A stretch of 64,000 bases of DNA, taken from the IMG/VR virus record IMGVR_UViG_3300004151_000006, positions 186,001 to 250,000 of that record; one strand, written 5' to 3'. This document shows positions 27,696-49,391 of the stretch, piece after piece (positions within the stretch are counted from its first letter, which is position 1; each line of letters starts with the position of its first letter). Under the pieces are notes generated by a model. It had not been told where the DNA came from, made no database searches, and was given only the letters and a program-made list of their open reading frames with translations. Made by a program: the position numbers and the translations under genes.

Positions 27696-27748
27696 ATGTG
27701 ATACTCCTTTAAGAGTAGATTTTATCATGTATGTAGTACGATACACGC

Positions 27749-29931: not shown

Positions 29932-30597
29932 ATGACACCATACCGAGATCCACGTGATATCCAAGAGTCCATCGTAGGACATATTCAAAATAGTTGCAAT
30001 GATTGGCCAGGTAAAATATCTACAGTCATCTTTTTATCTGGGTGTAATATCTTTTGTCCAACTTGTCATAATTGGGAGATAGCACATCCTCAAGGAAAAC
30101 TGGATAAAGTATTGCTAGATAATATCCTTATGTATATTCAAGCTAAAAGAAAATGGTTAGATGGAGTAGTCATTTCTGGTGGTGAACCTCTTATACACAA
30201 TAATCTGTCTGATTTAGTATTCCAACTCAAATCTATCTCTGATCTCCCCATCAAATTAGATACTAATGGATTGGATCCCGATGCATTAGATGAGATATTA
30301 GCTACCCAGTATATAGATACAGTCGCTATGGATATCAAAGCCTATTGGGATAAATATCCAACAGTCACTGGATGTAAACAAAAGGATCCAGAATATTTTC
30401 AACATCACATTGAAAGATCCATCCAAGTCATACAAGCTTATCAAGATGTTCACCTCTATTTTCGGACTACCTTGGTACCAGAGATCAATGATCCAATTTA
30501 TCTTGAACAAGTAAAGAGCATCATCCCGGCTGGGTATGTCCATAGGTATCAGACCTATAGACCCATTGACCACACCACTACCAAAGGATCACAGTAG
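29932..30597 (+). CDS. nrdG: Anaerobic ribonucleotide reductase activating radical-SAM enzyme
   Basis: CNIFCPTCHN (CxxxCxxC), GVVISGGEP, IKLDTNG, AMDIK, FRTT; directly upstream of nrdD. Confidence 0.9.
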   Translation: MTPYRDPRDIQESIVGHIQNSCNDWPGKISTVIFLSGCNIFCPTCHNWEIAHPQGKLDKVLLDNILMYIQAKRKWLDGVVISGGEPLIHNNLSDLVFQLKSISDLPIKLDTNGLDPDALDEILATQYIDTVAMDIKAYWDKYPTVTGCKQKDPEYFQHHIERSIQVIQAYQDVHLYFRTTLVPEINDPIYLEQVKSIIPAGYVHRYQTYRPIDHTTTKGSQ

Positions 30598-30598
30598 T

Positions 30599-33500
30599 AT
30601 GGAATCCCGTCAGATCGTCAAGCGTGATGGACGTATTGAATCTTGGTCCACACCTCGTATTGGTGATGCTATCTTTAAAGCATTCAAAGCTTCTGGTATC
30701 AAAGATCGAATGATGGCTGATAGACTCGCTAAGAAAGTAGCTGATAAAGTCTTTGAAGATGGTCGTGTCATGGTGGAACAAGAATTCGTACAGGATACAG
30801 TTGAATCTATTTTGATGAAATCGGGATTTGATGAAGTAGCTAGACGGTATATCATTTATCGTGAACAACGTAGAGCTATTCGATCAATGGATACTACATA
30901 CATGCTTGATAGTAAAGAAATTATTGATAGTTATTTAGATGAATCAGATTGGCGTGTAAATGAAAATGCTAATATTGGTATGAGTGTATCTGGTCTTATT
31001 CTTCATATGCAGGGTGAGATGCAGAAAAAATATGTACTCAATAGTGTATATACTAAAGAAATTCGAGAAGCACATATGAATGGGTATTTCCATATACATG
31101 ATTTATCATTCTCACTTGTCGCATACTGCTCAGGATGGTCATTTAGAGATCTCTTATTGGATGGATTTTCTATTAAAAATGCATGCGCTGCAGGACCTGC
31201 AAATCATTTTACTGCTGCACTCGGTCAGTGTGTGAATTTTCTTGGGACTTTACAAAATGAGTGGGCTGGTGCACAAGCATTAAACAATTTTGATACATAT
31301 CTTGCACCATTTATTCGACATGATGGTTTGGATTATGAACAAACTAAACAGGCTATTCAGAATTTTATTCACAGTATTAATACTACTTCTCGTTGGGGAG
31401 GACAATGTCCTTTCACCAATGTCACCATTGATGTAACTTGTCCTGAACATATGAAAAATGAACCCGTGATCATTGGTGGAAAATATCAAGAATCCACCTA
31501 TGGTGAATATCAAACTGAAATGAATATGTTCAATAATGCATTTGTTGAAATTTTAATGAAAGGTGATAATAATGGTTCAATTTTTTCATATCCTATTCCG
31601 ACGTATAATGTTACTAAAGATTTTCCTTGGGAAAGTGAAGTGGTGACCAATGTATTGGGTATGACTGCTAAATACGGTATTCCTTATTTTCAGAATTTTA
31701 TCAATAGTGATCTTGATCCTAAGGATATTCGTAGTATGTGTCCTCTCACTGGTGATACTAAGGTACTAGTCCGATCTACACGTAATTTTACACAAACTGC
31801 GGACATTAAAACAATTTATGAAAGGAGTGTTAAAAATAATTTAGTTTATGAAGTTTGGACACCCGAAGGTTGGTCCTTTGCACGTCCAGTAAAAATGCCC
31901 ATGACAGATGTGTATGAAATTACTCTCAGTAATGGTAGTACAATTAAAATGGGTGAAAATCATCTTCAGCCGGTGCGTGGAATAAATCAACTGGAGATCT
32001 TGTCGGCAAAAGATCTTAAAATGGATATGTGGATTCCGTATAATAAAGATGTAATTCCGAATTATGGCTTAGGAAATTATAGTCTTGGATATGCAGTTGG
32101 TGCTTATCTTGGTGATGGTTCGCTTACCTCTAAAGGTATTCTTTATTCCTTGAATCAAACTACTAAATTAAAGACCGCTTATGAATTGGCTGAAATTTGG
32201 GCATTCTTTGGTTTTAGTTCTAAATTGATTCCTTCTACTGATGGTGAATTGTTAACACTTAGAATTAATGGCCGTCCATGGGATTTAATTTCTGATTATG
32301 TTGGTGGAGATGGTGCTATAACAAAATATATTTCAGATGCAGTGTTTGATACTACTGAAGAATTTAAATTTGGACTTATTGATGGTCTAATGGATACCGA
32401 TGGATCTCGTGAAAAGAAACGTTTATATACTTCTTCTTTGGAACTTGTCAATACACTTAAAACACTCTTTACTCAGCTGGGAAAAAAATGTCGACTGTGT
32501 TCAGTGGATACTCGTGATGGTAGGCTGGGAACTGCGCCAAATTATTGTTTGAGTTTTACAGATAGAACTAGTTATGGTAATATGTTTAATGAAGATTCTG
32601 AATACAATTATTATTCAATTGTTAAAATTGAAAATTTAGGAAAACTTAATAATGAAGAATTGTATTGTTTTGAAGTGGCAAATGCTGATAACTTATTTAT
32701 GTTGGCTGACGGTATGATTACACACAACTGTCGATTGTCTCTTAACCTCAATGAAATTCGTAAGAAGACTGGTGGGTTATTTGGTGCTGGAGATCTGACT
32801 GGTTCAGTTGGTGTAACAACTCTCAATCTTTCTAAATTGGCATATCTTGCTCAAGATGAAAATGAATTTATGGATCTCATTACTGAATATGCTGATTTGG
32901 CTAAAGAATCTCTTGAGATTAAACGTAAATTTGTGAATAAACAATTAGAGTCTGGTCAGATGCCTTGGACTAAGAAATATCTTAAAAATGGATATGGTGG
33001 ACATTTTTCAACTATTGGCATTAATGCTGGACACGAAGCATGCATGAATCTTATTGGTAAAGGCATTGAAACTAAAGAAGGTACTGAACTCATGGTTCGA
33101 GTATTACAGCATCTTAATATACTTACCAAACAGTATCAAGAAGAAACTGGTAATCTCTATAATCTCGAGGCTGCACCTGCAGAAGGAGTAAGCTATCGAT
33201 TGGCTAAACTTGATAGAGAACTTTATGGTAAAAATATTTATATCAGTGGTAATGAAGAAACGCCATACTACACTAATTCTACAAATCTCCCCGTGAACCA
33301 CACCTCTGATGTATTTGAAGCATTGGAACATCAAGATAAATTACAACCTTTATATTCGGGTGGGACAGTTTTTCATTCCTTTTTTGGAGAAGCTATGCCC
33401 GATGTAGAATCAGTAAAAAACTTTCTAATCAAAGCTATGTCTATGACTAAGATTCCATATATTTCTATTACACCCACTTTTAGTATTTGTCCTGAACATA

Positions 33501-33709
33501 AATATATATCTGGTGAACATTTTGAATGTCCCAAATGTGGGTGTGAGACTAGCGTATATTCAAGAATCGTTGGCTATTTCAGAAGTATTTCTCGTTGGAA
33601 TGTTGGAAAAAAACAAGAATTCAAAGAAAGAAAAACATATGATATTGATTATACTGAGTTGAATTCTGAAATGAAAAATAGCACAGTCAACGAAAAGTTG
33701 GAAGTCTAA
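30599..33709 (+). CDS. nrdD: Class III ribonucleoside-triphosphate reductase with ATP cone, interrupted by an intein
   Basis: VKRDG ATP cone, HIHDL, QNEWAGAQA, RSMC[intein]CRL, YYTNS, CPEH...CPKC Zn site, glycyl-radical loop YSRIVGYF. Confidence 0.95.
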   Translation: MESRQIVKRDGRIESWSTPRIGDAIFKAFKASGIKDRMMADRLAKKVADKVFEDGRVMVEQEFVQDTVESILMKSGFDEVARRYIIYREQRRAIRSMDTTYMLDSKEIIDSYLDESDWRVNENANIGMSVSGLILHMQGEMQKKYVLNSVYTKEIREAHMNGYFHIHDLSFSLVAYCSGWSFRDLLLDGFSIKNACAAGPANHFTAALGQCVNFLGTLQNEWAGAQALNNFDTYLAPFIRHDGLDYEQTKQAIQNFIHSINTTSRWGGQCPFTNVTIDVTCPEHMKNEPVIIGGKYQESTYGEYQTEMNMFNNAFVEILMKGDNNGSIFSYPIPTYNVTKDFPWESEVVTNVLGMTAKYGIPYFQNFINSDLDPKDIRSMCPLTGDTKVLVRSTRNFTQTADIKTIYERSVKNNLVYEVWTPEGWSFARPVKMPMTDVYEITLSNGSTIKMGENHLQPVRGINQLEILSAKDLKMDMWIPYNKDVIPNYGLGNYSLGYAVGAYLGDGSLTSKGILYSLNQTTKLKTAYELAEIWAFFGFSSKLIPSTDGELLTLRINGRPWDLISDYVGGDGAITKYISDAVFDTTEEFKFGLIDGLMDTDGSREKKRLYTSSLELVNTLKTLFTQLGKKCRLCSVDTRDGRLGTAPNYCLSFTDRTSYGNMFNEDSEYNYYSIVKIENLGKLNNEELYCFEVANADNLFMLADGMITHNCRLSLNLNEIRKKTGGLFGAGDLTGSVGVTTLNLSKLAYLAQDENEFMDLITEYADLAKESLEIKRKFVNKQLESGQMPWTKKYLKNGYGGHFSTIGINAGHEACMNLIGKGIETKEGTELMVRVLQHLNILTKQYQEETGNLYNLEAAPAEGVSYRLAKLDRELYGKNIYISGNEETPYYTNSTNLPVNHTSDVFEALEHQDKLQPLYSGGTVFHSFFGEAMPDVESVKNFLIKAMSMTKIPYISITPTFSICPEHKYISGEHFECPKCGCETSVYSRIVGYFRSISRWNVGKKQEFKERKTYDIDYTELNSEMKNSTVNEKLEV
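31742..32728 (+). mobile_element. Intein with LAGLIDADG homing endonuclease in NrdD (start 31742 Pro or 31739 Cys)
   Basis: (C)PLTGDTKV block A, ENH block B, GAYLGDGS and GLMDTDGS LAGLIDADG motifs, YCFEV block F, ITHN|C splice junction. Confidence 0.9.
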
Positions 33710-33713
33710 TATA

Positions 33714-33743
33714 GAGTGGGGTGGGCAGTGGCCCACCCCACTC
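33714..33743. terminator. 13-bp stem hairpin after nrdD
   Basis: GAGTGGGGTGGGC-AGTG-GCCCACCCCACTC followed by ATTTACTTTTT. Confidence 0.7.
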
Positions 33744-33752
33744 CATTTACTT

Positions 33753-33768
33753 TTTAAACATATATTAT
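33753..33768 (+). promoter_or_regulatory. Putative early (vRNAP) promoter
   Basis: TTTAAACATATATTAT; same motif recurs upstream of many genes and resembles the phiKZ early core TATATTAC. Confidence 0.5.
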
Positions 33769-33803
33769 TTTAATGTATCCATAACTAAAATTCCTGGAGG
33801 AAT

Positions 33804-35312
33804 TTGTATATGCGGGCTATTTATAATGAAGATATGGATTTCTTTGATAAATCCATATCTGATGAACAGTGGTTTCTCAATAAAATTTTAGAAGGAAGAT
33901 TTGAATTATTAGAAAATGATACGGTGATCTATGATAAAGTAAGAAATACTCACAGAAAACCTGGAATAAAACATAATGGTGATACTCCATCCGTCCGGTA
34001 TAAAGTGTATGATATTAAAATTGCATCCCCACAACGTGGTAAGAGATCAATTTATCTTCATAAATTTGTATTTATATTTTATACAAAAAATATAGTACTA
34101 AAAAATACTTATTTAAAGTTTAAAGATGGGAATATTGGGAATACAAGTTTTGATAATTTGGAATTAGTATATAAACGAAAAGAAAATGATGATTTTTATA
34201 ATGATGAAATTTCTGCAAAGCAATGGTTTTATTCTGAAATTATAAAAGATCGTTTTGTATTATCTGAAAATGATACTAAAATATACGATAAGGTGCGAGA
34301 TAAATATGTCATACCTGGAGAATTTTCAATTTATTATAAAGACAATAAACGCAAAAAGAATTATCTTCGGTATTGCGTTGATTCTAGTATTCCGTATTAT
34401 AAAGAACGGTATATTCAATTGCATCAATTCGTTTGGATGTATTATCATAAACAATTGATACCTGAAGGACATGAGGTACACCATAAAGACGAAGATAAAC
34501 ACAATAATTGGCATGGAAATTTAGAACTGATATCTAATTTTGACCACATGCGACATCACAACAACAGTACAGAACGTCGACAAAAATTGACATCTCCTGA
34601 AAGTATAGCTCGACAAGTGAAACATAGACTATTATATCGAATGTTAAAACATAAGTATTGTTTTTCTGAAAAGAAGCTTTGTAGTAAGTGTAAAAGGTTA
34701 TTACCATTTATACGTTTTGATAAAGCAAACGAACAAAATTATATTTTAAAGTTAGAATCACTATGTAAAGAATGTAAATATATTTTATATGGGGACAATA
34801 AAAAGAACATAGACCGCTATCAATTCCCATCCGGGGTTTTATCAGATAAAATTGTTCTTGATATAAGATTTTTATTTAACATTGTAAATCAATCTTTCTA
34901 TCTTGTACAAAAGAAGTATCCTAACATTTCTAAACAAGATCTTAAAGATATCATTCTAGGTAATACATACACTCACATAGATACACTTCATGGTATCCAC
35001 GATACTCCTTATAGAAATGAAAAATATATCAATCAAATTGAACACTGTCATATACAACATGCATACAAACAGGCTGATTTCACTCCAGAAGAGTTATCCA
35101 AGATCTATGGAAGATCATTAAATGAAATTATCTATGTACTTACCGTAGGAAGGTATAGACCAGAAATAGAAATGGTAATGGATGTGCAGAAGTATGTGAA
35201 ACTATATAACGGGATATATACACAGCGTGAAGAATATATAATTGATTTCAATAAACTCAAGGAACGTGATATTAGTATCCCCACCAATGTGGTAGCTGGT
35301 GAATTAGTTTAA
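33804..35312 (+). CDS. Free-standing HNH homing endonuclease with two HNH-like modules
   Basis: LHKFVF...FKDGNIGNTSFDNLEL and LHQFVW...VHHKDEDKHNNWHGNLEL; CSKC/CKEC Zn pairs. Confidence 0.75.
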   Translation: MYMRAIYNEDMDFFDKSISDEQWFLNKILEGRFELLENDTVIYDKVRNTHRKPGIKHNGDTPSVRYKVYDIKIASPQRGKRSIYLHKFVFIFYTKNIVLKNTYLKFKDGNIGNTSFDNLELVYKRKENDDFYNDEISAKQWFYSEIIKDRFVLSENDTKIYDKVRDKYVIPGEFSIYYKDNKRKKNYLRYCVDSSIPYYKERYIQLHQFVWMYYHKQLIPEGHEVHHKDEDKHNNWHGNLELISNFDHMRHHNNSTERRQKLTSPESIARQVKHRLLYRMLKHKYCFSEKKLCSKCKRLLPFIRFDKANEQNYILKLESLCKECKYILYGDNKKNIDRYQFPSGVLSDKIVLDIRFLFNIVNQSFYLVQKKYPNISKQDLKDIILGNTYTHIDTLHGIHDTPYRNEKYINQIEHCHIQHAYKQADFTPEELSKIYGRSLNEIIYVLTVGRYRPEIEMVMDVQKYVKLYNGIYTQREEYIIDFNKLKERDISIPTNVVAGELV

Positions 35313-35435: not shown

Positions 35436-36044
35436 GTGGGGTGTATGTCATTGAGTAAGTTAACTAGAGATTGGTTATGGTCTATGTTTATTGCAAGAAT
35501 ATTCTTTGCCTATTCATATACCATTTCTACGGTGTATCTTTGGAATCATTTGGAGTCTAAACATAACGCAGTAGCTGGTATATTGGCTGCAGGATTTGGT
35601 ACTGTTGCATCACAATTTTGTTTAAATGGTCGCATCCGGACATGTATCCTAAAACATGGGATATCACTCTTACTGATAATAACAGCCATTGATGCTGGAA
35701 CAGAATTGTTCTTATTGGTGAGTCCATTTACTAAGTTGATTGGGGATGTGATAGCTGGGCCATTTACATATCAGATCCTCAAGATGTTGGTGTTGGAACG
35801 TAAAAATGTTATCTATCAAAATCCTGAAGATCGTATCTTGTTTGATGTAAAATTTGATAAATACACCAATTTGGCCTTGGTGGTTGGATGTGTTGGGGTA
35901 TTGTGTTATTCTCCAGATATTGAAGTAGTGGTAGGTATCTCTGTGTTAGCAAATGTGCTACAATTTGGGTTAATGGTTTGGAGATTTAAACTATGTGATA
36001 GATACATGTGTCACCATGGATTGGAATTTGCCATAACACGGTAG
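35436..36044 (+). CDS. Hypothetical multi-pass membrane protein (half-MFS-like, 5-6 TM)
   Basis: Alternating hydrophobic segments over about 200 aa. Confidence 0.6.
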   Translation: MGCMSLSKLTRDWLWSMFIARIFFAYSYTISTVYLWNHLESKHNAVAGILAAGFGTVASQFCLNGRIRTCILKHGISLLLIITAIDAGTELFLLVSPFTKLIGDVIAGPFTYQILKMLVLERKNVIYQNPEDRILFDVKFDKYTNLALVVGCVGVLCYSPDIEVVVGISVLANVLQFGLMVWRFKLCDRYMCHHGLEFAITR

Positions 36045-36052
36045 ATGATGTG

Positions 36053-36078
36053 GTGGGTGGGGGATATCCCCCACCCAC
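36053..36078. terminator. Perfect 26-bp palindrome
   Basis: GTGGGTGGGGGAT|ATCCCCCACCCAC; T-rich run downstream. Confidence 0.65.
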
Positions 36079-36197
36079 AATGATGGGGTATTTATTTTTT
36101 TTTATAATGCCGATTGCATAACTAATCTATTTAGTTTATAGTCTGAAATTATATATGTCCTAAATCTAATATAGTCCAAATGATATGGGAGGACATC

Positions 36198-37787: not shown

Positions 37788-37791
37788 TAGG

Positions 37792-37817
37792 TGGGTGTAC
37801 CCCATGGGGTACACCCA
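37792..37817. terminator. Perfect 26-bp palindrome
   Basis: TGGGTGTACCCCA|TGGGGTACACCCA. Confidence 0.65.
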
Positions 37818-37825
37818 TCATCATG

Positions 37826-37840
37826 TTAAATATATATTAC
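37826..37840 (+). promoter_or_regulatory. Putative early promoter
   Basis: TTAAATATATATTAC contains an exact TATATTAC. Confidence 0.55.
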
Positions 37841-37884: not shown

Positions 37885-38262
37885 ATGGTTAATCAAGAAG
37901 AGAATGTGTTGAGTCCGGATGAACAATATAGAAAAGATATTATCACCTTTGTTAAATTATTATGTGATCAGAAAAAATTACTTACTTTTAATTTTACATA
38001 TACCCTTGGTGTGGATGATTCTAATGTAAATGAAATTTTAGAATTTGTTTCTAAGGTACCAGATTCACTTAAAGAAATGTTTCAGATTGATATCTTAGAA
38101 GAAAATTGTCACAAAAGAAAAAAAGATGATGTGGATATTCATACAGGACAATGGTGCATGGCCAATATGGAGACACTTTTTAACTATGTGAGTAAGTGTC
38201 AACAGGAAATGAATGATACAATTATTGCTATGTTAGAAACTATTGCTGTGGAACATAGGTGA
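37885..38262 (+). CDS. Hypothetical protein, 125 aa
   Basis: GGAGG RBS. Confidence 0.7.
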   Translation: MVNQEENVLSPDEQYRKDIITFVKLLCDQKKLLTFNFTYTLGVDDSNVNEILEFVSKVPDSLKEMFQIDILEENCHKRKKDDVDIHTGQWCMANMETLFNYVSKCQQEMNDTIIAMLETIAVEHR

Positions 38263-38297
38263 TCTAAACTTAAAGTTGTTCATTAAAGGAGAACCCC

Positions 38298-38687
38298 ATG
38301 GCAGAACAACTTATCGTTCGATTGACTGGTATCATTGACGATAGTGCAGTGGTGCTGGACTTTACTATTGAAGATCTATTAAAACGTATGTGTGAATTTA
38401 CTGATGATTATATTCTTGAATCAAAAGCTGAGCATGATGATGGTTGGAATATGTTAGCCACTCTTACACTATGCAATGGTTTTAAAAAGAGACCATTGAT
38501 GGTACTAAGTCACAGACATATACCAGATCCAATTCCATCTGATCAAGTGGGTGAATATGTTAAAAATTTCTTTATTTATGAACTGCTGATGTTTATCCAT
38601 GATGAATCTGAAGAATCTTTACGTAAAGATGATATATGGTGTATTGTACGATTCCCGCATCATAAGGAGAATCCATATGTCCAATAA
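38298..38687 (+). CDS. Hypothetical protein, 129 aa
   Basis: AAGGAG RBS. Confidence 0.7.
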   Translation: MAEQLIVRLTGIIDDSAVVLDFTIEDLLKRMCEFTDDYILESKAEHDDGWNMLATLTLCNGFKKRPLMVLSHRHIPDPIPSDQVGEYVKNFFIYELLMFIHDESEESLRKDDIWCIVRFPHHKENPYVQ

Positions 38688-39222
38688 AAGACATCTCATG
38701 CTTAGAGATAGAGCTGTTGGTAATAGCTTTGCTTTAGTATATTCTGCATCAGTAGATAAACATAAAAGTGATTATGAATTTTATTGTGCTGCACAAGAAG
38801 AATTGGAAATGATGAGAAAGTTTCCGACTGTAGTCACTTGTATGTTTACAACAAAGATAATGAGCTTATGTGAAGAAGCTCCAGATACTCCATGGAAAAA
38901 ATATACTCAAGGTATGCGTGAACACTTTATCATTTATCCCGATGTAAAGACTATTCATGTTTTTGATAATATTGGATATCATAAAGATTGGTTTAGTGAT
39001 ATCACAAAATGTATTTATACTTTGAATAAAAATGGCATTGCTTATTATGTTGATTATTTGGATTGTCCAAATTACATTGATGAGTTACAAGAACGTTTTC
39101 ATATTCTAGATAACTATTTTGAATCTTTAGAAGCTAGATGGAGTGATGTGCATGATCCCTGTGACTTGAGTGATAAGTTTGAAGTATCTGATATTCAACG
39201 TATCTTAGGTGAAATAGAATGA
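38677..39222 (+). CDS. Hypothetical protein
   Basis: AAGGAG RBS before ATG 38677. Confidence 0.7.
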   Translation: MSNKRHLMLRDRAVGNSFALVYSASVDKHKSDYEFYCAAQEELEMMRKFPTVVTCMFTTKIMSLCEEAPDTPWKKYTQGMREHFIIYPDVKTIHVFDNIGYHKDWFSDITKCIYTLNKNGIAYYVDYLDCPNYIDELQERFHILDNYFESLEARWSDVHDPCDLSDKFEVSDIQRILGEIE

Positions 39223-39683
39223 ATAATAATGATACACATAGTGAAATGGTTCCAGCATATTGGGATAATTTATATGATACACTCTTTAGACCTAAGATAT
39301 TAGAAGTCTATCATGATTGTTGTGAAGAACTTGAATTGGAGATCTTTCCAAGTGAAATATGCAAAAAGTTAAATGATACCATGAAATTATTAGAATATAC
39401 TGCAGTACTTGGGATTGCTACATATCTAGATAGAATGGATAAACAAATAAAATATACTAAAGATATTAATTTCATCATGCCTGGTTGGTTATCATTTATT
39501 GGTGCTACAAATAAAGAAGATTATCCATCAAATACATATATCCTTTCAATAAATATTGTGAGTAAAGATATGCTAGAACATATATTTGTAACTGTGAGTA
39601 TGGAATTTTATAAAGGTAGATCTGATGGTATGATGGAATTAGTCACCACACTTTATGAAGTTGTACCAGAATACGTCCAATAG
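39219..39683 (+). CDS. Hypothetical protein, 154 aa
   Basis: ATGA coupling with the upstream gene. Confidence 0.7.
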   Translation: MNNNDTHSEMVPAYWDNLYDTLFRPKILEVYHDCCEELELEIFPSEICKKLNDTMKLLEYTAVLGIATYLDRMDKQIKYTKDINFIMPGWLSFIGATNKEDYPSNTYILSINIVSKDMLEHIFVTVSMEFYKGRSDGMMELVTTLYEVVPEYVQ

Positions 39684-39704
39684 AATTTAAAAGTTAATAT
39701 CAAT

Positions 39705-39905
39705 ATGTCCAATTCAACAGCAAGTCAAATTAATTTATCTGGAGTGAATACTGATTTTGATGGAGATGAAATACTTTACATTAAAATACAAAAACCACGT
39801 AAATGGTTATCTGGTAAAGAAAATAAACGTATCCATAATAAAATTACTAAACGTGGTCGTCCATTTAATATTAAAAATATAAATAGATTTCCAAAGTTAA
39901 ATTAA
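39705..39905 (+). CDS. 66-aa ORF carrying the RNAP catalytic motif NTDFDGDE followed by a basic tail
   Basis: Motif encoded at 39747-39770; weak RBS. Confidence 0.45.
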   Translation: MSNSTASQINLSGVNTDFDGDEILYIKIQKPRKWLSGKENKRIHNKITKRGRPFNIKNINRFPKLN

Positions 39906-39913
39906 TGGATAGG

Positions 39914-39942
39914 AGGAGGACCACCATAATGGTGGTCCTCCT
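39914..39942. terminator. 14-bp stem hairpin
   Basis: AGGAGGACCACCAT-A-ATGGTGGTCCTCCT; T-rich run downstream. Confidence 0.65.
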
Positions 39943-40150
39943 ATCTACTTTATATTTTTTAATAAAAGTACGACATTCATTACGCTATAAATATATATCA
40001 TCTATGCGAAGACACATAGATGATGATGTCTCGGGGACTCGACATGATCATTTGTGTGAATCAAATCGAATATCATCACATGGTGTGATGAATACGATGG
40101 GTCATATAACCCAAATACTTTTAGTCTTAAACTTTCTCAGGAGTATACTC

Positions 40151-42295
40151 ATGGCTAAGATCATCTTTCTTATCATGGTGTCAATGTTGTTAGCAGATCA
40201 TAGCTTTGGTCAGACCAAAAACAATGATCTCCCCACAGTGGAAGAAGTACAGGATAATATCCAAAGATCTGGTAAGCAGTGGACAGCTAAACGCAATAGA
40301 TTCATGGATATGAGTCAGGCTGAGATCGATGCCACACATGGAGCAGATGATTGGTCTACTCTCTCCAGAGATATGGATCTCAAAGGTTTAGAGGGTTCTC
40401 CATATGACAAAGATGTCACTGGTGTCCTCACTGATAATCCCCTTCCATCAGCACATGATTGGAGGAATCATAATGGAAAAGATTATACTACTCCAACCAA
40501 ATATCAATCCAGCTGTGGTGCATGTGTCACATTTGCAACAGTTGCTATATGGGAAACACTCCTTAAGATTCAGTACTTGGATGAAAGACCTTCATTCAAT
40601 CCGGATCTCAGTGAACAGTTTATAGTTTCATGTCCATTACCGAAATCTTGTTTTGGAGTCAATCCAACTTTTACAATACCGGATATGGTACAAAACGGTA
40701 CTTATTCGGAGACATACATCCCATACATTGCAAAGCCAGTACCTTGCAGTGAAGTGACAAGCGGTGTTGATCTTACAAAGATTGGGCATTATCGTGTTAT
40801 GAATTATGAACATGTGGTTGTGTATGAACCCGGTGGAGATGATGTGAGTATTGACATGTTAAAACGTATGTTGGTGGAGATTGGACCATTTTTCACAGTG
40901 ATGATGCAATACGATGATTTCTATCTTTATGCGGGTGGAGTATATTCCACAACACCAACTGCGAGTTATCGTGGGCTTCATGCCGTCTGTGTGATTGGGT
41001 ATGATGATGCTGAACAATGTTTCATTGTGAAAAATTCATGGGGAGATTGGTGGGGAATAAATGGTTATTTTAAGATAGCCTATTCAGAAGCTACAAAATT
41101 ATCCCGTACTACATTTGGCTTAGATACATGGGCATTTTCTGGTGCTGTCATTGATCGTGAAGAACCAGAGCAAGAGATACCCCCAATAGCCAAAGTCATA
41201 AACTTTCCCACAGGTACAATATATGCACATGATCGGGTGTACAATGTAACTTCTGAACCAGCAACTGCAGTATCATTTGCTTTTCGTACTGATGGTGGTA
41301 CCTGGAGTGAACAGATACCCATTTTAGGATCTTTGTGGATCTATGATCCCACTGATGGTCCACATACACTTGAAGTGATTACATGTAGTGTATCTGGTGC
41401 TTGTCAATCTAAAAATGATCCCACTACATATCATTGGATCAATGATACTACACCTCCAGAATTTATCAATATCACCAATCCACCAGCTGCTATCACTGAT
41501 GTCACATCTTACGTATTCAATGTCACTGCGAGTGCAGATACTGTAAAATATATGTGGGCATCTGATTTAATAAGTGGCTGGTCTGCTATGCTACCAATAT
41601 CAAATGCAACTATCACTTTAAATGATGTCCCCGATGGTAAACATTATATTATTCTGGTAGCCAGTGATGTAATCGATAATTACAGTGAGCACACTCGGGT
41701 GGAATGGACGGTATCGAGTAAAATCACAGCATTGTTAAGTGATCTCCCAAATATCAAAACTACAGATACTTCAACACGGATCACGGTATCTTCTAATTCA
41801 TCAAAATACATTGGATATCGATATCGTCTTGATGGTAGTATGTGGTCTGCAACTGCAGATAAAGATACAAAGATACAGTTATCTGGGTTATCAACAGGTG
41901 TACATACTCTTGAAGTAATTGCAGTGGGGAGTGACGGTAGTATTCAAGATGAAACTGCTACTTCAATGTATGCTTGGATAATTGAAGAAGCCGCTGCAGC
42001 TGTAGCAGTATTGCAAAATCCACCTGATTCAGTATCTACCGCATCGAAATATCAACTGTATGTTGGTGGGGAAAATACCGTGGCATATAAATATTCTATC
42101 GATGGTCAACCTTTATCACAGGAGTATGATATCAACACACCTATCAATTTGACACTTTCATCGGGCCTGCACATACTCCGGTTGTCAGGAAAGAATAATG
42201 CTGGTGTATGGCAAGAAAGTTATACCACTAACAGTTGGACAGTCAAACGGTCTACTGTAAACCTTGGTGCAGTCTATCAGCTATTATTGAATTAA
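40151..42295 (+). CDS. Secreted papain-family (C1A) cysteine protease with C-terminal Ig-like domains
   Basis: CAGGAG RBS; signal peptide MAKIIFLIMVSMLLA; QSSCGAC (Gln/Cys), GLHAVCVIGY (His), KNSWG (Asn); repeated beta-rich domains; hydrophobic C-terminus VNLGAVYQLLLN. Confidence 0.85.
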   Translation: MAKIIFLIMVSMLLADHSFGQTKNNDLPTVEEVQDNIQRSGKQWTAKRNRFMDMSQAEIDATHGADDWSTLSRDMDLKGLEGSPYDKDVTGVLTDNPLPSAHDWRNHNGKDYTTPTKYQSSCGACVTFATVAIWETLLKIQYLDERPSFNPDLSEQFIVSCPLPKSCFGVNPTFTIPDMVQNGTYSETYIPYIAKPVPCSEVTSGVDLTKIGHYRVMNYEHVVVYEPGGDDVSIDMLKRMLVEIGPFFTVMMQYDDFYLYAGGVYSTTPTASYRGLHAVCVIGYDDAEQCFIVKNSWGDWWGINGYFKIAYSEATKLSRTTFGLDTWAFSGAVIDREEPEQEIPPIAKVINFPTGTIYAHDRVYNVTSEPATAVSFAFRTDGGTWSEQIPILGSLWIYDPTDGPHTLEVITCSVSGACQSKNDPTTYHWINDTTPPEFINITNPPAAITDVTSYVFNVTASADTVKYMWASDLISGWSAMLPISNATITLNDVPDGKHYIILVASDVIDNYSEHTRVEWTVSSKITALLSDLPNIKTTDTSTRITVSSNSSKYIGYRYRLDGSMWSATADKDTKIQLSGLSTGVHTLEVIAVGSDGSIQDETATSMYAWIIEEAAAAVAVLQNPPDSVSTASKYQLYVGGENTVAYKYSIDGQPLSQEYDINTPINLTLSSGLHILRLSGKNNAGVWQESYTTNSWTVKRSTVNLGAVYQLLLN

Positions 42296-42305
42296 TCTAT
42301 GATGA

Positions 42306-42331
42306 CATGGGGGACCATTCGGTCCCCCATG
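42306..42331. terminator. 11-bp stem hairpin
   Basis: CATGGGGGACC-ATTC-GGTCCCCCATG. Confidence 0.6.
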
Positions 42332-42427
42332 CCCTTACAAATGCTACTCATTTTTTTATAAATATATATCATAAAATTGAATGTGGATTAAAATCTGATT
42401 AACACTTTAACAATGAGGTAAAATGTT

Positions 42428-42652
42428 TTGGCTGGAAATTTATGTTCATTAATTGCTGTGACTGGTAAAGGCCGTGGTCCCCGTCAACCTGAAGTCAGGC
42501 CCGACACTGGACGTGAAGCTGTCATCTCCTTACATCAGCGTAAGGGGATGGTTACCTGCAAAGTGTGTAAGACACGATTTCCTCGATTTAAGATGAAGCA
42601 TGGGTTATGCCCATTCTGTCATCACGACCGGAAACAGAAGATTGAGGATTGA
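42428..42652 (+). CDS. Small Zn-ribbon protein, 74 aa
   Basis: CKVC...CPFC; GAGGT RBS, TTG start. Confidence 0.55.
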   Translation: MAGNLCSLIAVTGKGRGPRQPEVRPDTGREAVISLHQRKGMVTCKVCKTRFPRFKMKHGLCPFCHHDRKQKIED

Positions 42653-42657
42653 TTTTA

Positions 42658-42682
42658 GGGACCTGGGCAATGCCCAGGTCCC
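42658..42682. terminator. 12-bp stem hairpin
   Basis: GGGACCTGGGCA-A-TGCCCAGGTCCC. Confidence 0.6.
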
Positions 42683-42815
42683 GTATCAAATATAGTAGAT
42701 ATCTTTTTATTAACAATGATTATGCTGATCATCTTTTTTCAAATATATATAATCAAAGTGAAGTCAATAGGATATCCCACTGACTAATCGTCTTAACATC
42801 CGAAAGGAGAGCATC

Positions 42816-43016
42816 ATGGCTACTACCTTTACGGGACTCCTTGATCGTGAACCGATCGTCGGGGTCCTCCCCGAATTTTGGTGGCACGATGAGACCCGTC
42901 CTGGTTTTACCCTGGTGCTCGACCAGGATGTCCAGGACCAAATCAATACTGGAAACTGTGACTGGACAGCTATGGCTGACAGTCTTGGTGCCCAGGCTAT
43001 AGGGGCTGCCGCATGA
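42816..43016 (+). CDS. Hypothetical acidic protein, 66 aa (GC-rich codons)
   Basis: AAAGGAG RBS; coupled to the downstream HTH gene. Confidence 0.65.
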   Translation: MATTFTGLLDREPIVGVLPEFWWHDETRPGFTLVLDQDVQDQINTGNCDWTAMADSLGAQAIGAAA

Positions 43017-43324
43017 ACACCTCCATTATCCCAATGAGGAGACCGCTCTCTTCTCCTCCCATGCAACTGAAAGAAGCTGCCAAATCCAGCATGAATCGAC
43101 TCATGCTGGCTGAGATGACTTGTCGAAAGGCGGGTCATCGGATCCGGGTCCTACGAATAGCTTATCGCATGACCCGTGAGGACATGGCCCAGCGGGTGGG
43201 TCTTACCCCCAGTCAGATTGAGGAACTGGAAAGCTGCAAGGGGAATACTTGCAGAAATCTCCTCAAACAAGTGGCTTCCTTCTTCAAAGTGCCGGTCGAC
43301 GAGCTGGCACTTGACTGTCAGTAG
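43013..43324 (+). CDS. XRE/Cro-family helix-turn-helix regulator
   Basis: GHRIRVLRIAYRMTREDMAQRVGLTPSQIEELES...LKQVASFFKVPVDEL. Confidence 0.8.
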   Translation: MNTSIIPMRRPLSSPPMQLKEAAKSSMNRLMLAEMTCRKAGHRIRVLRIAYRMTREDMAQRVGLTPSQIEELESCKGNTCRNLLKQVASFFKVPVDELALDCQ

Positions 43325-43329
43325 GGTCA

Positions 43330-43365
43330 ATGGGATGGGTACCCCATTTGGGGTACCCATCCCAT
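43330..43365. terminator. 17-bp stem hairpin
   Basis: ATGGGATGGGTACCCCA-TT-TGGGGTACCCATCCCAT. Confidence 0.65.
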
Positions 43366-43439
43366 GTCACATGGTACTCATATTTTTTGATATATACATT
43401 ATAGTTCTGATATCAATACAAAATTCCACGGAGGAACAC

Positions 43440-43772
43440 ATGCTTAGTGAAGAACAAAAACTCCCCATCTTCAACTATGGAAAGATCGTGGTATGGCGAG
43501 TATCATACTTCCGAAAGGATGATACTACGCTTCATGATAACCTTTTTACCAACCATGATTTCAGTCTGCAGTTTCTTGGTGGGGGTTGGCCACTCACTGA
43601 AAATGAAGAATTCCAGTTTATTCAAGAACTTCTCGGCACCAAACGGTGGTATCCTCAAATCAAATCTTATATCGAAATGGTCCGGATCCAAAAGATCCAA
43701 CTCGACTTCGGTCGGGATGAAAATGTCAGATTCAAGGAAACCGTCACCATCATCGGCAACTGGACCCATTGA
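43440..43772 (+). CDS. Hypothetical protein, 110 aa
   Basis: GGAGG RBS before ATG 43440. Confidence 0.65.
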   Translation: MLSEEQKLPIFNYGKIVVWRVSYFRKDDTTLHDNLFTNHDFSLQFLGGGWPLTENEEFQFIQELLGTKRWYPQIKSYIEMVRIQKIQLDFGRDENVRFKETVTIIGNWTH

Positions 43773-43784
43773 TCGCATGCTAGT

Positions 43785-43810
43785 GGAGCAGCCCCATGTG
43801 GGGCTGCTCC
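43785..43810. terminator. 12-bp stem hairpin
   Basis: GGAGCAGCCCCA-TG-TGGGGCTGCTCC. Confidence 0.6.
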
Positions 43811-43896
43811 CATCAAACATGTATCTCTACCTTTTTTTATTGGTATTTTGGTGCGATTCTATAGATCACATACATCCTCTCTAAGGAGATTTATAT

Positions 43897-46800
43897 ATGT
43901 TGACTATGCAGGACTTTTTCTTTGAATGTGATGATATTGAAACAAATATCATCTCCAATGAAATGTTTAACTATCCAAGATTTAAACTTAATTATCATAA
44001 CTGGAAGTATTCCTTCTTGACTAATAATTTTTTTGACATTGGTACAATGCAATTGCCATGGGATGCTACGTATCATACTGCAGATAATTGGTTTGGTGGC
44101 GTACAACAGGACTATCCAAATATAGTCAATGATCCTTTTATCTCTAACGAAATGTATTATAAATGGATCTATCATCAAACTATATTTCAATTAAATGGTC
44201 CTATTCAATATGATACTAAATACAACTATTTGACTAGTGGGTTGTCTACTATCTTAAATGCATTTCGATCACAATATAAAGCACAGTTTCGATATCTTCA
44301 AAAATTAGAAGACACTCCAAGAAAGAAAGAATCTCTCACTATCATTAATTACAATCCTTTATTTAGATGTTACACATTTGGTGCATTGCAATATTTTAAG
44401 AAAGTAAATTTGATATTATCTACTATGTTTAATACAGTAGCTCACATGATTGATATGTATCCAGATAAACATCAATATATCTTGATCCCATGGAATAATG
44501 AAATCTATACTCAAGATCAATTTACACGTACAAAGAAAAAGATCGATATCTCTTCATTGAGAAATCCCAATAGTTTTCATTTTATTTTTATGGTCTATTT
44601 GATGAATTTCATTGATCCTAATACTGATCTTGGACTCTTTAATCAATATCCAGAAAAGTACTGGAAAGAAACTAATTTAGTATTTCGAAATGGTAATAAA
44701 GCCACTATCTTTAATTTAGAAGATCTCAAGACTCTTAATGATAAAAATAGAGCCTATCTCAAGGTAGTATCGCATCTCAATATCTTATCTACCATAGGGA
44801 GCAGTACTATAGTACTGGATACCTCTGAAGTAGATGGTATCTCTGGACCAACAGATCGTATCCCAGTGATCACTGAGACTAAATGTACTATCTCATTACC
44901 TGATATCACTACAGTACCTTTAGATAAGACTAATCCTGAAGTCACTGATAAATCAGAGAGTGTCTCTAAAGATCCAGTACCTATCGTAGATACTACACAG
45001 AGTATCATGCCTAGCAGTATCATTGGTACAACCAAATCAGTGATCCAAAAGACTTTTATCCCTATGGTAAAATCCACAGTATCTATTATGCCTAAAGTGA
45101 TCTCTAAATCAGATACACCAAATCAAATATTAGAAGACACTAAACCTGTGATGAGAAATCTCATTCCACAATTAGCTTCTAATATCACCCAGATAGAATC
45201 AGAGACTGATCCCAATGTAATCAAACAGCGTAGTAAAGAATATTTAGAAGACATTGATGCACAAGCTGTAACATATATTGATAATAGAGAAGATCTCACC
45301 CCAAAACAAAAAGAAAGACTCAAGACTGTAGCAAAGAAATATAAACAAGTCACTATTGGTGAAGAGACTCTTCAAGATATCATCCTTAAAAACAATGATG
45401 TACTCATTGATGAAGATCCACCACAGTCTGTGATAGATACTTTACCTGATAAGACTATGGCTAAATCAAAAGCATTTCATTTTGATAAAGCTTATATCCA
45501 TAAAACTATGAAAAAAGACTTAGCCAGCATTGCTGTAAACTTTAATAAACTTGGTATGTTTTTGACAGATATTAAGACTTCACAGACTATTAATGAATTG
45601 ACACAATCTGAAGAATACACTTTTAAGTTTGAAGATGTCCAAGGTAAATCACATACTGTCAAATTCAGCGTGCCTATCATTGATAGTAATGGATATTGTT
45701 ATATCAACGGTGTCAAAAAGTATTTGAAGAAACAAATGATCAATATCCCAATTTGTAAGATAGGTGAGAATAAGGTTTCTATGGTCTCCAATCAGAATAA
45801 AGTATTGATCTTGCGTAATGAAACTAAAGCTCATAGTTTTGATACACAGATAGATAAAATAGTAGAACTTGGAAAATCAGTACTTAATATAATCTATGGT
45901 ACACTGGATCTCAATCTTTCTTTAGCTTATGAATATGTCTCCATTGCACAAAAATATAATACCATTACTATTAAATCACAAGATGGTAAATCACATACTT
46001 TATGTTTTGATTATTATAATAGATTTAAAGATATTGCTGATGTAGCACTACATTCTAAATTAGATGCATTGGAGAAACAATATGGTACACTCTTTGGTAA
46101 AGATGGTCATACTGGATATTATTTTATTGATACTAATAACTTAGTCAGTTTGATTACATTGGATAGAAAAGATATCACACCTTCAGATGTGGTATCTATT
46201 GTAGATATCTTTAAGACTACATATCCTAAAGAGTTAGCTAGTAAGATAGGTTTCATCACAGAATGGATAGATATTAACTTAGTCTCTAAACCTTTACCTG
46301 TTGGATTTATCTTAGCATACCGATATGGTCTAGTCAACATGATGGATCACCTTGGGGTGAAATATAAGCTCTTAGCTAAACGTGGTAATAGTGTGTTAGA
46401 AGAGAGTGAATTCTCAGGTGAGAATGTTATTTCTGCTACTGAGTCTTTTGATACTTTGACTATGGATAAAGTGATCAATATTGATACTCGTAGGAAATGG
46501 AAGATCGATGATGTCAAACATCTTGAACTTTTAGAAAAGTACAATATATCTAAAACTGAATGTATCATCAGTGGTAGTGCTGCTATGATAGCACATCGAT
46601 ATCCGAACTGTATCAACAATGATCTTGATATTGTGGTGACTGATAGAGTATATGCTAAACTTAAAAAGGATACTACAAATTTTTCAGTACATAAAGCACG
46701 TGATGGTATTGGTACTGATATAAAATTGGTCAGCAAAGATGAGAAACTTGAGATCACTAAATATTTCCATGCTTTATCTGAAGAATATACTTTTGATGTG

Positions 46801-47862
46801 GTGAAAAAAGAAAGTGTGAATGTCATTGATGAATATATGTTCACTGATTTGGATTTCTTATTTAAAATGTATACCAAACTCAATAGACCTAAAGATCAAG
46901 ATAAGATCAAATGGTTGACGGAACATCAAGGTAAGACAGTAGCTGCCAATGAATCCCTGATATCACATGTGACTGATAAAATCATCTATATTGAAGATGA
47001 AGCACATCATTTGGTGAATGCTAATGAAGCACTCACTGTAGATAAGTACACTTACACCCCTGGGGATATAGTCATCAAATTCAAAGATTGTAATTTAGTC
47101 TTCAATAGGTATCCCATGTATCAATCTTTGATCATGTGTGGGCTCGATCATTTCAATACCCAAGCATATACCTTTGATGAATTTAATATGAAAGATGTAT
47201 ATTACTCACTCATGGAAGATAGGGGTATCAAATCTAACTACCTTAAAGCTGTTAATAGTTTCTTTGATCTCTTTATGGACCCTATCACCAAAGATGTACT
47301 TCAGCAGATGGGTGAACCAACTAATGTACAAGATCTCCTGATCAGAGCCAGTGTATTACTTACTACCAAAGATCATAAAGAGGCTTCATCTATAGCCAAC
47401 CACCGTATCCGTAGCTATGAACAATTCAATGCTATCATCTATAATGAAATGGCTAGAGCCTATGCAGCCTATCAAGTGGGTAGAGGTAAAGGTAATACTT
47501 TCAGTGTGAATCCCAATGCTGTATTCCAACGTATCATCCAGAACCCATCATTCACTATCGTAGAAGATATCAATCCTATCCAGGAATTAAAAGAAAGAGC
47601 TGGATTTACTTTTGCTGGTGTGGGTGGTCGTACATCTGAATCTTTTGTAGTGGATGATAGACGGTATCCTGAAGATGGTATTGGTATCATCTCTGAATCT
47701 ACAGTCGATAATGCTAAGGTCTCCATGAATGCTTATCTCACTGTTGATCCAACTATAGCTAATACTCGTGGTATCATTGATATTGAAGCTTTAAATAAAT
47801 TAAGTTCTAGTAATGTACTCAGTGTCACTGCACTTAATGCACCATGTGCAATGCATGATGAT
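43897..47862 (+). CDS. Virion RNA polymerase beta subunit (phiKZ gp178-like), exon 1
   Basis: PIIDSNGYCYING, LKKQMINIPICKI, LFMDPIT, HRIRSYEQF, TFAGVGGRTSESF, IGIISESTVD motifs; ends at ...HDD before the intron. Confidence 0.85.
46400..47040 (+). other. Nucleotidyltransferase-fold domain inserted in-frame in vRNAP beta
   Basis: IISGSAAM...NNDLDIVV (GS 46573-46578, DLD 46621-46629) and LNRPKDQDKIKWL; flanked by SGE, ATE, ANE and ANE. Confidence 0.6.
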
Positions 47863-48242
47863 GGAGATGTTGAATACACAGAAGATTCAGCATTATCTCT
47901 CTGTCCCACCAAATAGTGATATTTGGATGGTATCTCCCCTAATTGCTGGGATACCCTTAGAGCCATTCTACCTAAGCGGAGTGTGAAAACACACACGTGT
48001 CGAAAGACAGGTTGGAAAAGTGAATGGATTGGGTAATCAGCAGCGAAGTCCCTAAAGACACTATGTCCATGGGATGTGTTCAACGACTGACCGCTTATCA
48101 CGGTGTACACACTGAGTGGTGTGGAAATGGGGAGCACCCCAAGTGGGTGAAGGTATAGTCTCATCTGCATTGAAAGATGCAGCAGTACAGTATATTTATA
48201 CTGTACGGGATTGTAGGTAACGCTACAGTCCGAAGACACATG
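47863..48242 (+). ncRNA. Self-splicing group I intron without ORF, 380 nt
   Basis: P AATTGCTGGG 47941, Q AATCAGCAG 48035, R GTTCAACGACT 48078, S AAGGTATAGTCT 48150; P3 CTCCCC/GGGGAG; P1 gives U47862-G47903 wobble; terminal G48242; splicing restores HDD-SKRISF in frame. Confidence 0.85.
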
Positions 48243-49391
48243 AGCAAACGCATAAGTTTTATATCTACCCAGATGAGTCATGTGGTGGCTACTAAAGACC
48301 TTGATCTTTGTAGAGTCCGTACTGGATATGAAAATATGATAGGACAACAATGTAGTAGTACATATGTTGGTATAGCAAAACAAGATGGTGTAATCACACA
48401 AGTAGATAGAGCTAATAATATCCTTAGAGTGGATTATAAAGATGGAACAGCTGATGTGTATAGTTTTGGTGAACAATACACCAATATCTCTGGTATGTAT
48501 ATTACACAACATCTCATTTGTGTCGTAGACCAGGGTGATAAAGTAAAGAAAGGTGATATACTCTGTTTCAATGATCAATATTTTAAAATGGATAAATATA
48601 CTAAACAATTAAATGCTGGACATGGTGTGTTAGCTAAAGTGGTACTTATGGAGACCGATAATACACTTGAAGACAGTAATGCTATCACTAAACAGTTTGG
48701 TAAAAGACTTACCATCACACCCACACATACTCGAGATATTGTATTGACTAAAAATAGTGTGATACATCAATATCTTACAATAGGTACACATGTAAAGAAT
48801 ACTGATACTATATTGGTGTTTGAAGATGAAGATCTTGGCGATATGGGATCACTCACTGGTGGGGATATCTCAACTTTAGAGATGTTAAAGACACTTAATA
48901 AAAATATGCCTAAAGCTAAACATAGTGGTGAAATAGTCAAGATAGAGGCTTTTTATGCCTGTCCTATATCTGAGATGGGTGAATCTGTAGCTAAACTTGT
49001 CACTGAATGTAATAAATCTAAATTAACTAAATATAAGTTCTCTCGTGGTACCAATATGGAATATGATTATATTCCGCCCACAGTACTTCCTGAAAGGACT
49101 AAATATAAAGGTAATGAATTTGATAAGGATACGGTAGTCATTCAGTTTTATATCAAAGAGGATATAGCACATGGTGTTGGTGATAAAGCTGTACTTGGAA
49201 ATCAATTAAAAAGTACCTCTAATGAAGTATTAGAAGAACCTATTCTTTCTGAATCTGGTATAGAGATAGATGTCGTATTTGGTACTGCTAGTGTAGCAAA
49301 TCGTGTTGTACTTGGATGCTTTTTATCTGGTAGTGCATCTAGAGTATTGGAAGAATTACAATATCAAGCTGTAGATATGTATTTTAATTAA
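48243..49391 (+). CDS. Virion RNA polymerase beta subunit, exon 2 (spliced product about 1704 aa)
   Basis: KRISFISTQMSH, GVGDKAVLGNQLK and DVVFGTASVANRVV beta motifs. Confidence 0.85.
   Translation, partial: SKRISFISTQMSHVVATKDLDLCRVRTGYENMIGQQCSSTYVGIAKQDGVITQVDRANNILRVDYKDGTADVYSFGEQYTNISGMYITQHLICVVDQGDKVKKGDILCFNDQYFKMDKYTKQLNAGHGVLAKVVLMETDNTLEDSNAITKQFGKRLTITPTHTRDIVLTKNSVIHQYLTIGTHVKNTDTILVFEDEDLGDMGSLTGGDISTLEMLKTLNKNMPKAKHSGEIVKIEAFYACPISEMGESVAKLVTECNKSKLTKYKFSRGTNMEYDYIPPTVLPERTKYKGNEFDKDTVVIQFYIKEDIAHGVGDKAVLGNQLKSTSNEVLEEPILSESGIEIDVVFGTASVANRVVLGCFLSGSASRVLEELQYQAVDMYFN

Follow-up and report, generated by a model that had tools for sequence, protein, structure and literature searches.

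Short ORFs that carry the catalytic loop of RNA polymerase (RNAP) are already known in jumbo phages, where they are 3' exons of intron-split genes. In phiKZ, gp55 ends '...KAPN' and is followed by the HNH gene gp56, and the 61-aa gp56.1 is the 3'-exon tail; the first-pass annotation of the DNA described here, which placed the loop at the end of an intron-split gp55-56.1, was essentially right on this point. In the structure of phiKZ gp55, the loop (417-DFDGD-421) lies between strands beta5 and beta6 of the double-psi beta-barrel (PMC8287921). Phage vB_pir03 has a 125-aa 3'-exon CDS that is annotated as a beta' subunit. The beta subunit of the virion RNAP (vRNAP) offers a related case: in PhiPA3, the gp210 intron lies immediately after two conserved aspartates of the vRNAP beta gene (PMC11620839). 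When chimalliviruses compete, endonucleases encoded in introns at conserved RNAP sites play a part (Birkholz et al. 2024, PMC11620839).

Here, we describe a 66-aa ORF with the same loop (hereafter the mini-ORF) in a virus record of 286,688 bp and 35% GC from freshwater metagenomes. We analyzed bases 186001-250000 of this record, a stretch of 64,000 nucleotides that we refer to as the window. Because the genome holds two sets of split multisubunit RNAP genes, we take the phage to be a phiKZ-like (nucleus-forming, chimallivirus-type) jumbo phage, and its RNAP beta has only ~24% identity to that of any cultured phage. What is new here is that the loop ORF is detached, that the genome's own gene is intact, and that the ORF appears to be of a type from another lineage. 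The features of the locus, numbered from the first base of the window, are as follows:

39219..39683, + strand: upstream 154-aa ORF of unknown function, in the same frame as the mini-ORF and not beta'-like
39681-39683, + strand: TAG stop of the 154-aa ORF, in frame with the mini-ORF and 21 nt before its ATG
39705..39905, + strand: 66-aa mini-ORF, ATG to TAA, a probable orphan fragment of a gp55-type (non-virion RNAP beta'-N) gene
39747..39770, + strand: NTDFDGDE, the Mg-binding loop motif, 8/8 residues identical to the resident beta'-N gene
39834..39893, + strand: tail block HNKITKRGRPFNIKNINRFP; its match in beta'-N tails of the BONAISHI clade is the conserved block PHYNIHDTGKPFNIRGIIGLP, equally far from the motif
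39914..39942, + strand: intrinsic terminator hairpin, a 13-bp stem with 8 GC pairs, then a T-rich tract
39986..40001, + strand: promoter-like 16-mer TATAAATATATATCAT, which opens the next unit (peptidase island) and has an exact second copy at 42357-42372

The mini-ORF is the last frame in a run of small same-strand ORFs without known function. It closes a probable transcription unit (~37885-39905, with boundaries inferred from hairpins) in which the 154-aa ORF is the penultimate gene, and the terminator hairpin (dG -30.9 kcal/mol, z -5.7) begins 9 nt after its stop codon. Two GC-rich perfect hairpins at 36040-36080 and 37790-37830, after ORFs of 202 aa and 243 aa, respectively, look like further terminators that divide the accessory region into short units; both were read off ORF translations (VVGGGYPPPT; WVYPMGYTHH) and are absent from the pattern-scan list. 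Near copies of the 16-mer TATAAATATATATCAT occur at 12038, 33497, 53445, 60278, and 63974, and also before the beta'-N gene (G000 175398). Since it is found repeatedly in front of genes and brackets the peptidase gene exactly, this 16-mer is likely a phage promoter element. A longer, 62-nt repeat (39989-40050) has an 87% copy at G000 249977-250038, and 44 nt of this repeat (40007-40050) are also found, with 4 mismatches, on another contig of the same metagenomes.

Downstream of the terminator, a 3.9-kb island (40000-43890) has a GC content of 0.40-0.55 compared with 0.28-0.33, which gives it the appearance of inserted foreign DNA. One of its genes, at 40151-42295, is for a secreted C1 peptidase of the papain family (PF00112, E=1.9e-33) whose C-terminal repeats are Ig-like; others are for small HTH proteins (e.g., 43013-43324). 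After the island comes the intron-split virion-RNAP beta gene, with its start at 43897 (phrog_3148, E=2e-159). The first-pass annotation had placed the mini-ORF far from RNAP genes, which is wrong because this gene begins 4 kb downstream, with only the higher-GC island between the two. Elsewhere in the window, the stretch 30536-35312 holds a 1057-aa ORF for the anaerobic ribonucleotide reductase NrdD, in which a weak Pfam Intein_splicing match suggests that there may be an intein. After the NrdD ORF comes a 500-aa HNH_3 endonuclease ORF (33804-35312), which adds to the mobile-element load of the region. A 2608-aa ORF occupies 19920-27746 on the - strand.

Most of what the first-pass annotation had observed in the mini-ORF holds. 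The 66-aa peptide encoded at 39705..39905 (+) is exactly as it was quoted, with an NxDFDGD motif (NTDFDGD at residues 15-21, nt 39747-39767) and a Lys/Arg-rich tail. The ORF is also in frame with the upstream ORF (39219..39683) past the TAG at 39681-39683, and its ribosome-binding site is weak: the Shine-Dalgarno match is no longer than a 3-mer, and 51 of the 179 long ORFs are equally poor in Shine-Dalgarno at their first ATG. The tail is basic where real beta' tails are acidic, so that the charge is reversed. The coding signature is gene-like. Only 0.13% of same-composition shuffles of the mini-ORF keep the frame free of stops, and its codon likelihood is higher than that of all 400 stop-free shuffles. 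Codon usage is typical of the phage's genes and above that of all 591 spurious ORFs, three-base periodicity is intact (GC1/2/3 = 0.33/0.33/0.11), and both codon usage and periodicity are gene-like in both halves of the ORF. No fold is predicted for the 66-aa peptide (ESM model pLDDT 0.31). ESM Atlas matches of the peptide to aspartyl-protease fragments were dropped, as shuffled sequences reach the same scores. Read-through of the TAG, or an alternative code, was likewise rejected: TAG ends 57 of the 270 long ORFs, none of the five tRNAs is a suppressor, and reading through the TAG (as X) adds only 1.4 bits to the beta' match.

The motif is not a coincidence. The numbers expected per genome from six-frame residue frequencies are 0.05 for DFDGD, 0.002 for N.DFDGD, and 1e-4 for NTDFDGD; for the 8-mer NTDFDGDE, the expectation rounds to 0, and the 8-mer was seen in none of 60 Markov-simulated genomes. 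This agrees with the first-pass annotation, which considered a chance match of eight residues unlikely. The Thr at position 2 of the motif is particular to close relatives of the resident beta'-N gene. At the DNA level, the motif and the next codon are identical to the resident gene at 25 of 27 nt, but given the peptide, codon bias alone produces at least seven of eight identical codons with P=0.13, and the DNA flanking the motif is only ~30% identical. Because the nucleotide identity fits codon bias and the flanks are so different, the mini-ORF is not a recent copy of the resident gene, and recent duplication or gene conversion from that gene is ruled out. A perfect motif between near-random flanks is unlike an old neutral relic, which argues that the fragment is either young (from an unsampled donor) or under selection.

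Similarity to beta' continues beyond the motif. In a tblastn search of 50,697 phage genomes, the best match (database E=3) came from Vibrio phage BONAISHI, in a gene annotated as 'RNA polymerase beta prime subunit', and BLASTP of the mini-ORF against BONAISHI ORF72 gives 33% identity over 60 of 66 aa at the homologous position (pairwise E=2e-6). When the 7057 six-frame fragments of the genome are ranked with an HMM of the beta'-N family, the mini-ORF (E=0.017) comes second, behind only the real gene, and hhalign of the mini-ORF against a beta' C-terminal profile yields 93% probability over 51 columns. The 45-aa tail without the motif scores 10.8 bits against an HMM of three metagenomic sequences (L023, L024, and P0022) that leaves out BONAISHI itself; none of 2000 shuffles reaches that score, and the match sits at the same offset from the loop. 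Against the HMM of the BONAISHI clade, the tail without the motif scores 13.3 bits, and when the maximum over 10 clades is taken, 1 of 3000 shuffles reaches this score, so the coincidence that the first-pass annotation had kept as an option is rejected for the tail as well. The block common to the mini-ORF and the BONAISHI clade reads H..I....G[KR]PF.I...I...P. The tail gave no signal with the HMM of the resident clade or with seven cultured chimalliviruses (p=0.15). Because the tail matches the BONAISHI clade and neither of these, the fragment appears to be of a foreign, BONAISHI-like type; the homology outside the motif comes from this single clade. Among curated profiles, there was no Pfam match at E<=10 (PF00623 RNA_pol_Rpb1_2) and no phrog_2987 match; only custom profiles match.

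Judged from these comparisons of sequences and profiles, the mini-ORF is homologous to the catalytic loop of beta' and the following ~40 aa. The homologous span includes the strand before the catalytic loop, the Mg-binding loop, and the next ~40 aa of beta'; by reference to the phiKZ gp55 structure, the mini-ORF would span beta5, the loop, beta6, and the next ~35 residues, or ~40% of one barrel. With only ~60 aa, it does not contain the complete double-psi beta-barrel with the upstream GRNPTL element, the Zn-binding cysteines, or the clamp (about 430-530 aa), and it ends ~17 residues short of the normal C-terminus of the family. At the other end, a weak resemblance to beta' seems to extend past the ATG as far back as the TAG, in which case the mini-ORF's start codon may be internal to the fragment.

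The family to which the mini-ORF belongs is the gp55 type, the N-terminal half of the non-virion RNAP beta'. The resident gene of this type, 49 kb from the mini-ORF, is intact and intron-less: one uninterrupted 530-aa ORF (G000 175465-177057; phrog_2987, E=2e-82) with its own NTDFDGDE and C-terminus. Orthology to gp55 is supported by gene order, in that a chimallin gene precedes the gp55-type gene both in relatives and in phiKZ, and by annotations: that of phage RAY reads 'nvRNAP beta' subunit 1', and that of PhiPA3 agrees on the gp55 type. A second beta' is encoded by a 713-aa ORF with the motif DADVDGD (phrog_2986, E=6e-129). Whether the catalytic motif is kept elsewhere in the genome, a point raised in the first-pass annotation, is thus answered by NTDFDGDE in the gp55-type gene and DADVDGD in the second beta'. 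A phrog_12854 module (unknown function; weak DUF7277) is inserted in the vRNAP beta ORF at 43897-47916 (residues 877-1012), and the same module is also present in the 713-aa second beta' (residues 415-479 of L025:2855-4996, - strand).

Introns of groups I and II and HNH endonucleases have a hot spot at the DNA of the motif in the BONAISHI clade, in the phage's relatives, and in phiKZ. Exons, a group II intron, and HNH genes are found at the motif site in L008, L009, L010, L014, L023, and L024. Specifically, L009 (1745-2600) has a group II intron inside the DFDGD codons, with Rfam domain V/VI at L009:2515-2577; L008 (7290-7900) has a micro-exon of ~10 codons, 'ANIDFDGD'; L010 (1780-3060) and L024 (4659-6705) have HNH_3 endonuclease genes at the loop site; and L014, L023, and L024 have 3'-exon frames of 70-90 aa. 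The ORFs of eight related genes (P0012, P0013, and P0016-P0021) stop at or inside the motif, e.g., after 'NAD', 'NCDFD', or 'GRNPA'. Altogether, a stretch of ~60 nt is densely colonized in eleven metagenomic relatives (the eight truncated ORFs plus L010, L014, and L022), at several distinct insertion points and by introns of group II and of a group I-like kind, some with HNH genes and others without. No more than ~25 codons from the catalytic loop, the gp55-type genes of relatives have as many as two introns. Small ORFs like this one, for which the first-pass annotation had pointed to related jumbo phages, do occur there: relatives, phiKZ, and vB_pir03 have 3'-exon ORFs of 60-125 aa. The window itself contains a group I intron (47862-48182, + strand; Rfam RF00028, 64.5 bits) of ~320 nt without an endonuclease ORF, which splits the virion-RNAP beta gene (43897-47916 + 48177-49391) right after the '...AMHDD' codons, which end in two conserved aspartates as at the PhiPA3 gp210 site; in the related contig G001, the virion-RNAP beta gene is uninterrupted.

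We found no homologs of the mini-ORF among 15 billion proteins. The searches covered IMG/VR, 5.8 billion clustered proteins, 1.84 billion representatives, GenBank phages (tblastn), PDB sequences, NCBIfam, and Pfam, and they returned only the mini-ORF itself, one weak beta' match, and repeat proteins. Other contigs that carry the mini-ORF are 100% identical, a scan of JGI metagenomes with the neighboring gene found only an identical genome, and there are no sequence variants at the mini-ORF in four DNA runs. The whole accessory operon is absent from G001 (95 kb, 38% beta'-N identity), which is the only long related contig; a closer beta'-N, 85% identical, is that of P0009.

The repeat proteins lead to a reading in which the mini-ORF is unrelated to RNAP and is instead the remnant of a Ca-binding cadherin-like or bacterial Ig repeat (Big_9, He_PIG type), whose signature 'L.G.TD.DGD.L.Y....P...LSG' happens to read NTDFDGDE here. 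The proteins in question were found by phmmer over 1.84 billion representatives; they carry TDVDGDSLTY units (15 stretches in P0003, 6 in P0006), are Big_9/Cadherin/He_PIG by Pfam at 1e-11 to 4e-20, and have a cadherin-like/Big_9 unit of the form 'ITLAGTDVDGDSLTYTVVQAP..GTLSG'. An HMM of these repeats gives the mini-ORF 19.9 bits, as high as the beta' HMM, with most of the score coming from the flanks, which beat all 1000 motif-preserving shuffles, and hhalign assigns 88% probability to the match. In addition, phrog_18061 (125 positions) matches residues 6-44 of the mini-ORF (E=2.9e-4, 22 bits), although only at profile positions 79-117; it has no match to the beta' genes of the phage, BONAISHI, or G001, and it is independent of the repeat proteins selected by the query. 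The repeat proteins, however, entered the comparison because they matched the mini-ORF best, the addition of 6-15 weak copies inflates their E-values, and other top matches are unrelated repeat proteins without the motif. Curated Pfam models (Big_9, Cadherin_4/5, He_PIG) do not match the mini-ORF at E<=10, only ~35 of ~90 domain positions align (residues 4-38), and the mini-ORF shows no similarity to the Ig-like repeats of the neighboring peptidase. With an Ig-type origin, the agreement of N, F, and E with the resident beta' loop would also have to be accidental, and there would be no explanation for the BONAISHI-type tail block and its correct spacing (p about 3e-4), so we regard such an origin as improbable. 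Still less credible, to the point of being nearly dismissible, is the idea that the mini-ORF is a needed piece of a split beta', either a detached, trans-spliced exon or a subunit translated on its own to provide the catalytic loop. Its size and content are indeed those of real 3' exons (phiKZ gp56.1, the 79-aa ORF of L024, and the 125-aa CDS of vB_pir03), and the first-pass annotation had proposed such a detached exon or trans-acting piece. However, the resident gp55-type gene is uninterrupted with its own loop and tail, and the second beta' is intact with DADVDGD, so no detached or trans-acting piece is needed. Furthermore, at Rfam gathering thresholds there is no intron or intron half at 39-40 kb (the sole Rfam intron in the window is at 47862-48182), and just 21 nt separate the mini-ORF from the preceding gene. 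No 5' exon lies near the mini-ORF, the upstream ORFs have no beta' similarity, and the fragment breaks off ~17 residues before the family's C-terminus. We also considered a decayed, larger beta' gene in the upstream ORFs and rejected it, as no other beta'-like fragment occurs nearby in any frame.

Our preferred reading, to which we give a probability of about 0.6, is that the mini-ORF is an orphan ~60-codon fragment of a foreign-type gp55-like gene, left by recombination at the intron/endonuclease hot spot. In the BONAISHI clade, in relatives, and in phiKZ, introns and HNH homing endonucleases repeatedly break and recombine the gp55-type gene exactly at the loop codons, and breakage at the loop leaves the loop-plus-tail segment as a separate 3'-exon ORF of 60-125 aa. 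Given the intron hot spot at the motif, breakage and repair with foreign DNA there is a plausible source of an ectopic fragment, which could have been deposited in connection with intron/endonuclease traffic and have come to rest as the final frame of a strain-specific accessory operon, immediately in front of the terminator. We infer that the transfer took place by recombination between co-infecting phages and that the fragment has no function. It is probably not a working polymerase part, because it makes up ~40% of one double-psi beta-barrel, has no predicted fold, and lies in a genome with complete catalytic subunits. A recombination relic was among the options of the first-pass annotation and is the best fit to the beta' loop homology, the isolation, and the foreign-clade tail; that annotation thus holds in its observations, apart from the distance to RNAP genes, and in its relic reading, while its detached-exon and coincidence readings fall away and its active-site mimic or decoy is neither favored nor countered. 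The lack of homologs, the absence of the accessory operon from G001, the lack of a Shine-Dalgarno sequence, the upstream similarity, the truncated C-terminus, and the lack of a fold favor a relic. The evidence is mixed, as the open frame, the coding-like appearance, the perfect motif, the reversed charge, the one-clade support, and the rival profile matches count against it. Part of this would suit an exapted small protein that shares the beta' origin but is translated and selected as a 66-aa basic protein keeping the acidic DFDGD loop; such a protein might bind nucleic acid or Mg, or disturb the assembly or activity of the phage's own, the host's, or a competing phage's RNAP. The frame has stayed open against 0.13% odds with gene-like codon usage and periodicity in both halves, the motif is perfectly kept while the flanks have diverged, and the charge reversal of the tail could be adaptive. 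Re-initiation is plausible because the mini-ORF is inside a transcription unit, 21 nt past the preceding stop and 9 nt before a strong terminator. On the other hand, no homolog was found, hence there is no sign of conservation, and the mini-ORF has neither a Shine-Dalgarno sequence nor a predicted fold; we know of no way in which a double-psi beta-barrel fragment acts alone. The same coding signature would be expected of a young fragment that came from a phage with similar composition. As both sets of evidence are explained by a young fragment whose donor is unsampled and similar in composition, we favor the relic, and an exapted protein appears possible but doubtful. A more specific version is a rather unlikely one: that the phage keeps and translates a 66-aa 'active-site loop' mini-protein, a foreign-type beta' loop fragment with an evolved basic tail, exapted from intron/homing-endonuclease debris and acting, during infection or in competition with co-infecting jumbo phages, either on nucleic acid or on RNAP, where it would compete in assembly or at the active site.

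If the relic reading is right, the mini-ORF is a tangible record that distant nucleus-forming phages have exchanged DNA at a site that is a battleground of introns and homing endonucleases, and intron/endonuclease conflict at RNAP sites has recently been shown to affect phage-phage competition. The importance of the mini-ORF itself is modest unless translation and function are shown, and it is only moderately unusual among known systems. With Big_9/He_PIG/cadherin-like repeats, it shares a TD.DGD motif of the Ca-binding type in a strand-loop-strand arrangement, and it is ~45% identical over 28-35 aa; it differs in that there is no Pfam match, about a third of the domain aligns, and the matches were selected by the mini-ORF query. 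With BONAISHI ORF72 (AXH70813.1) and its metagenomic relatives, it has in common the loop, followed at an equal distance by the block H..I....G[KR]PF.I...I...P. Those proteins are ~430-500 aa long with acidic tails, whereas the mini-ORF is a basic, cut-down fragment with an identity of only 33% over 60 aa.

Close in form are the 3' exons of phiKZ (gp56.1 of gp55/gp56/gp56.1) and vB_pir03, which, like the mini-ORF, are short stand-alone ORFs with the DFDGD loop and/or the following tail, cover the same part of the protein, and are of similar length. Those 3' exons lie directly downstream of a 5' exon and an intron (often with an HNH gene) and are joined by splicing; unlike them, the mini-ORF has no adjoining intron, its tail is of another clade, and the resident gene is intact. 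The PhiPA3 gp210 system is similar in what it targets, the catalytic codons that are most conserved in a phage RNAP gene. In that work, the target is the beta subunit and the endonuclease is live, whereas here, with no endonuclease linked, we see a putative ectopic exon-like by-product at the beta' site.
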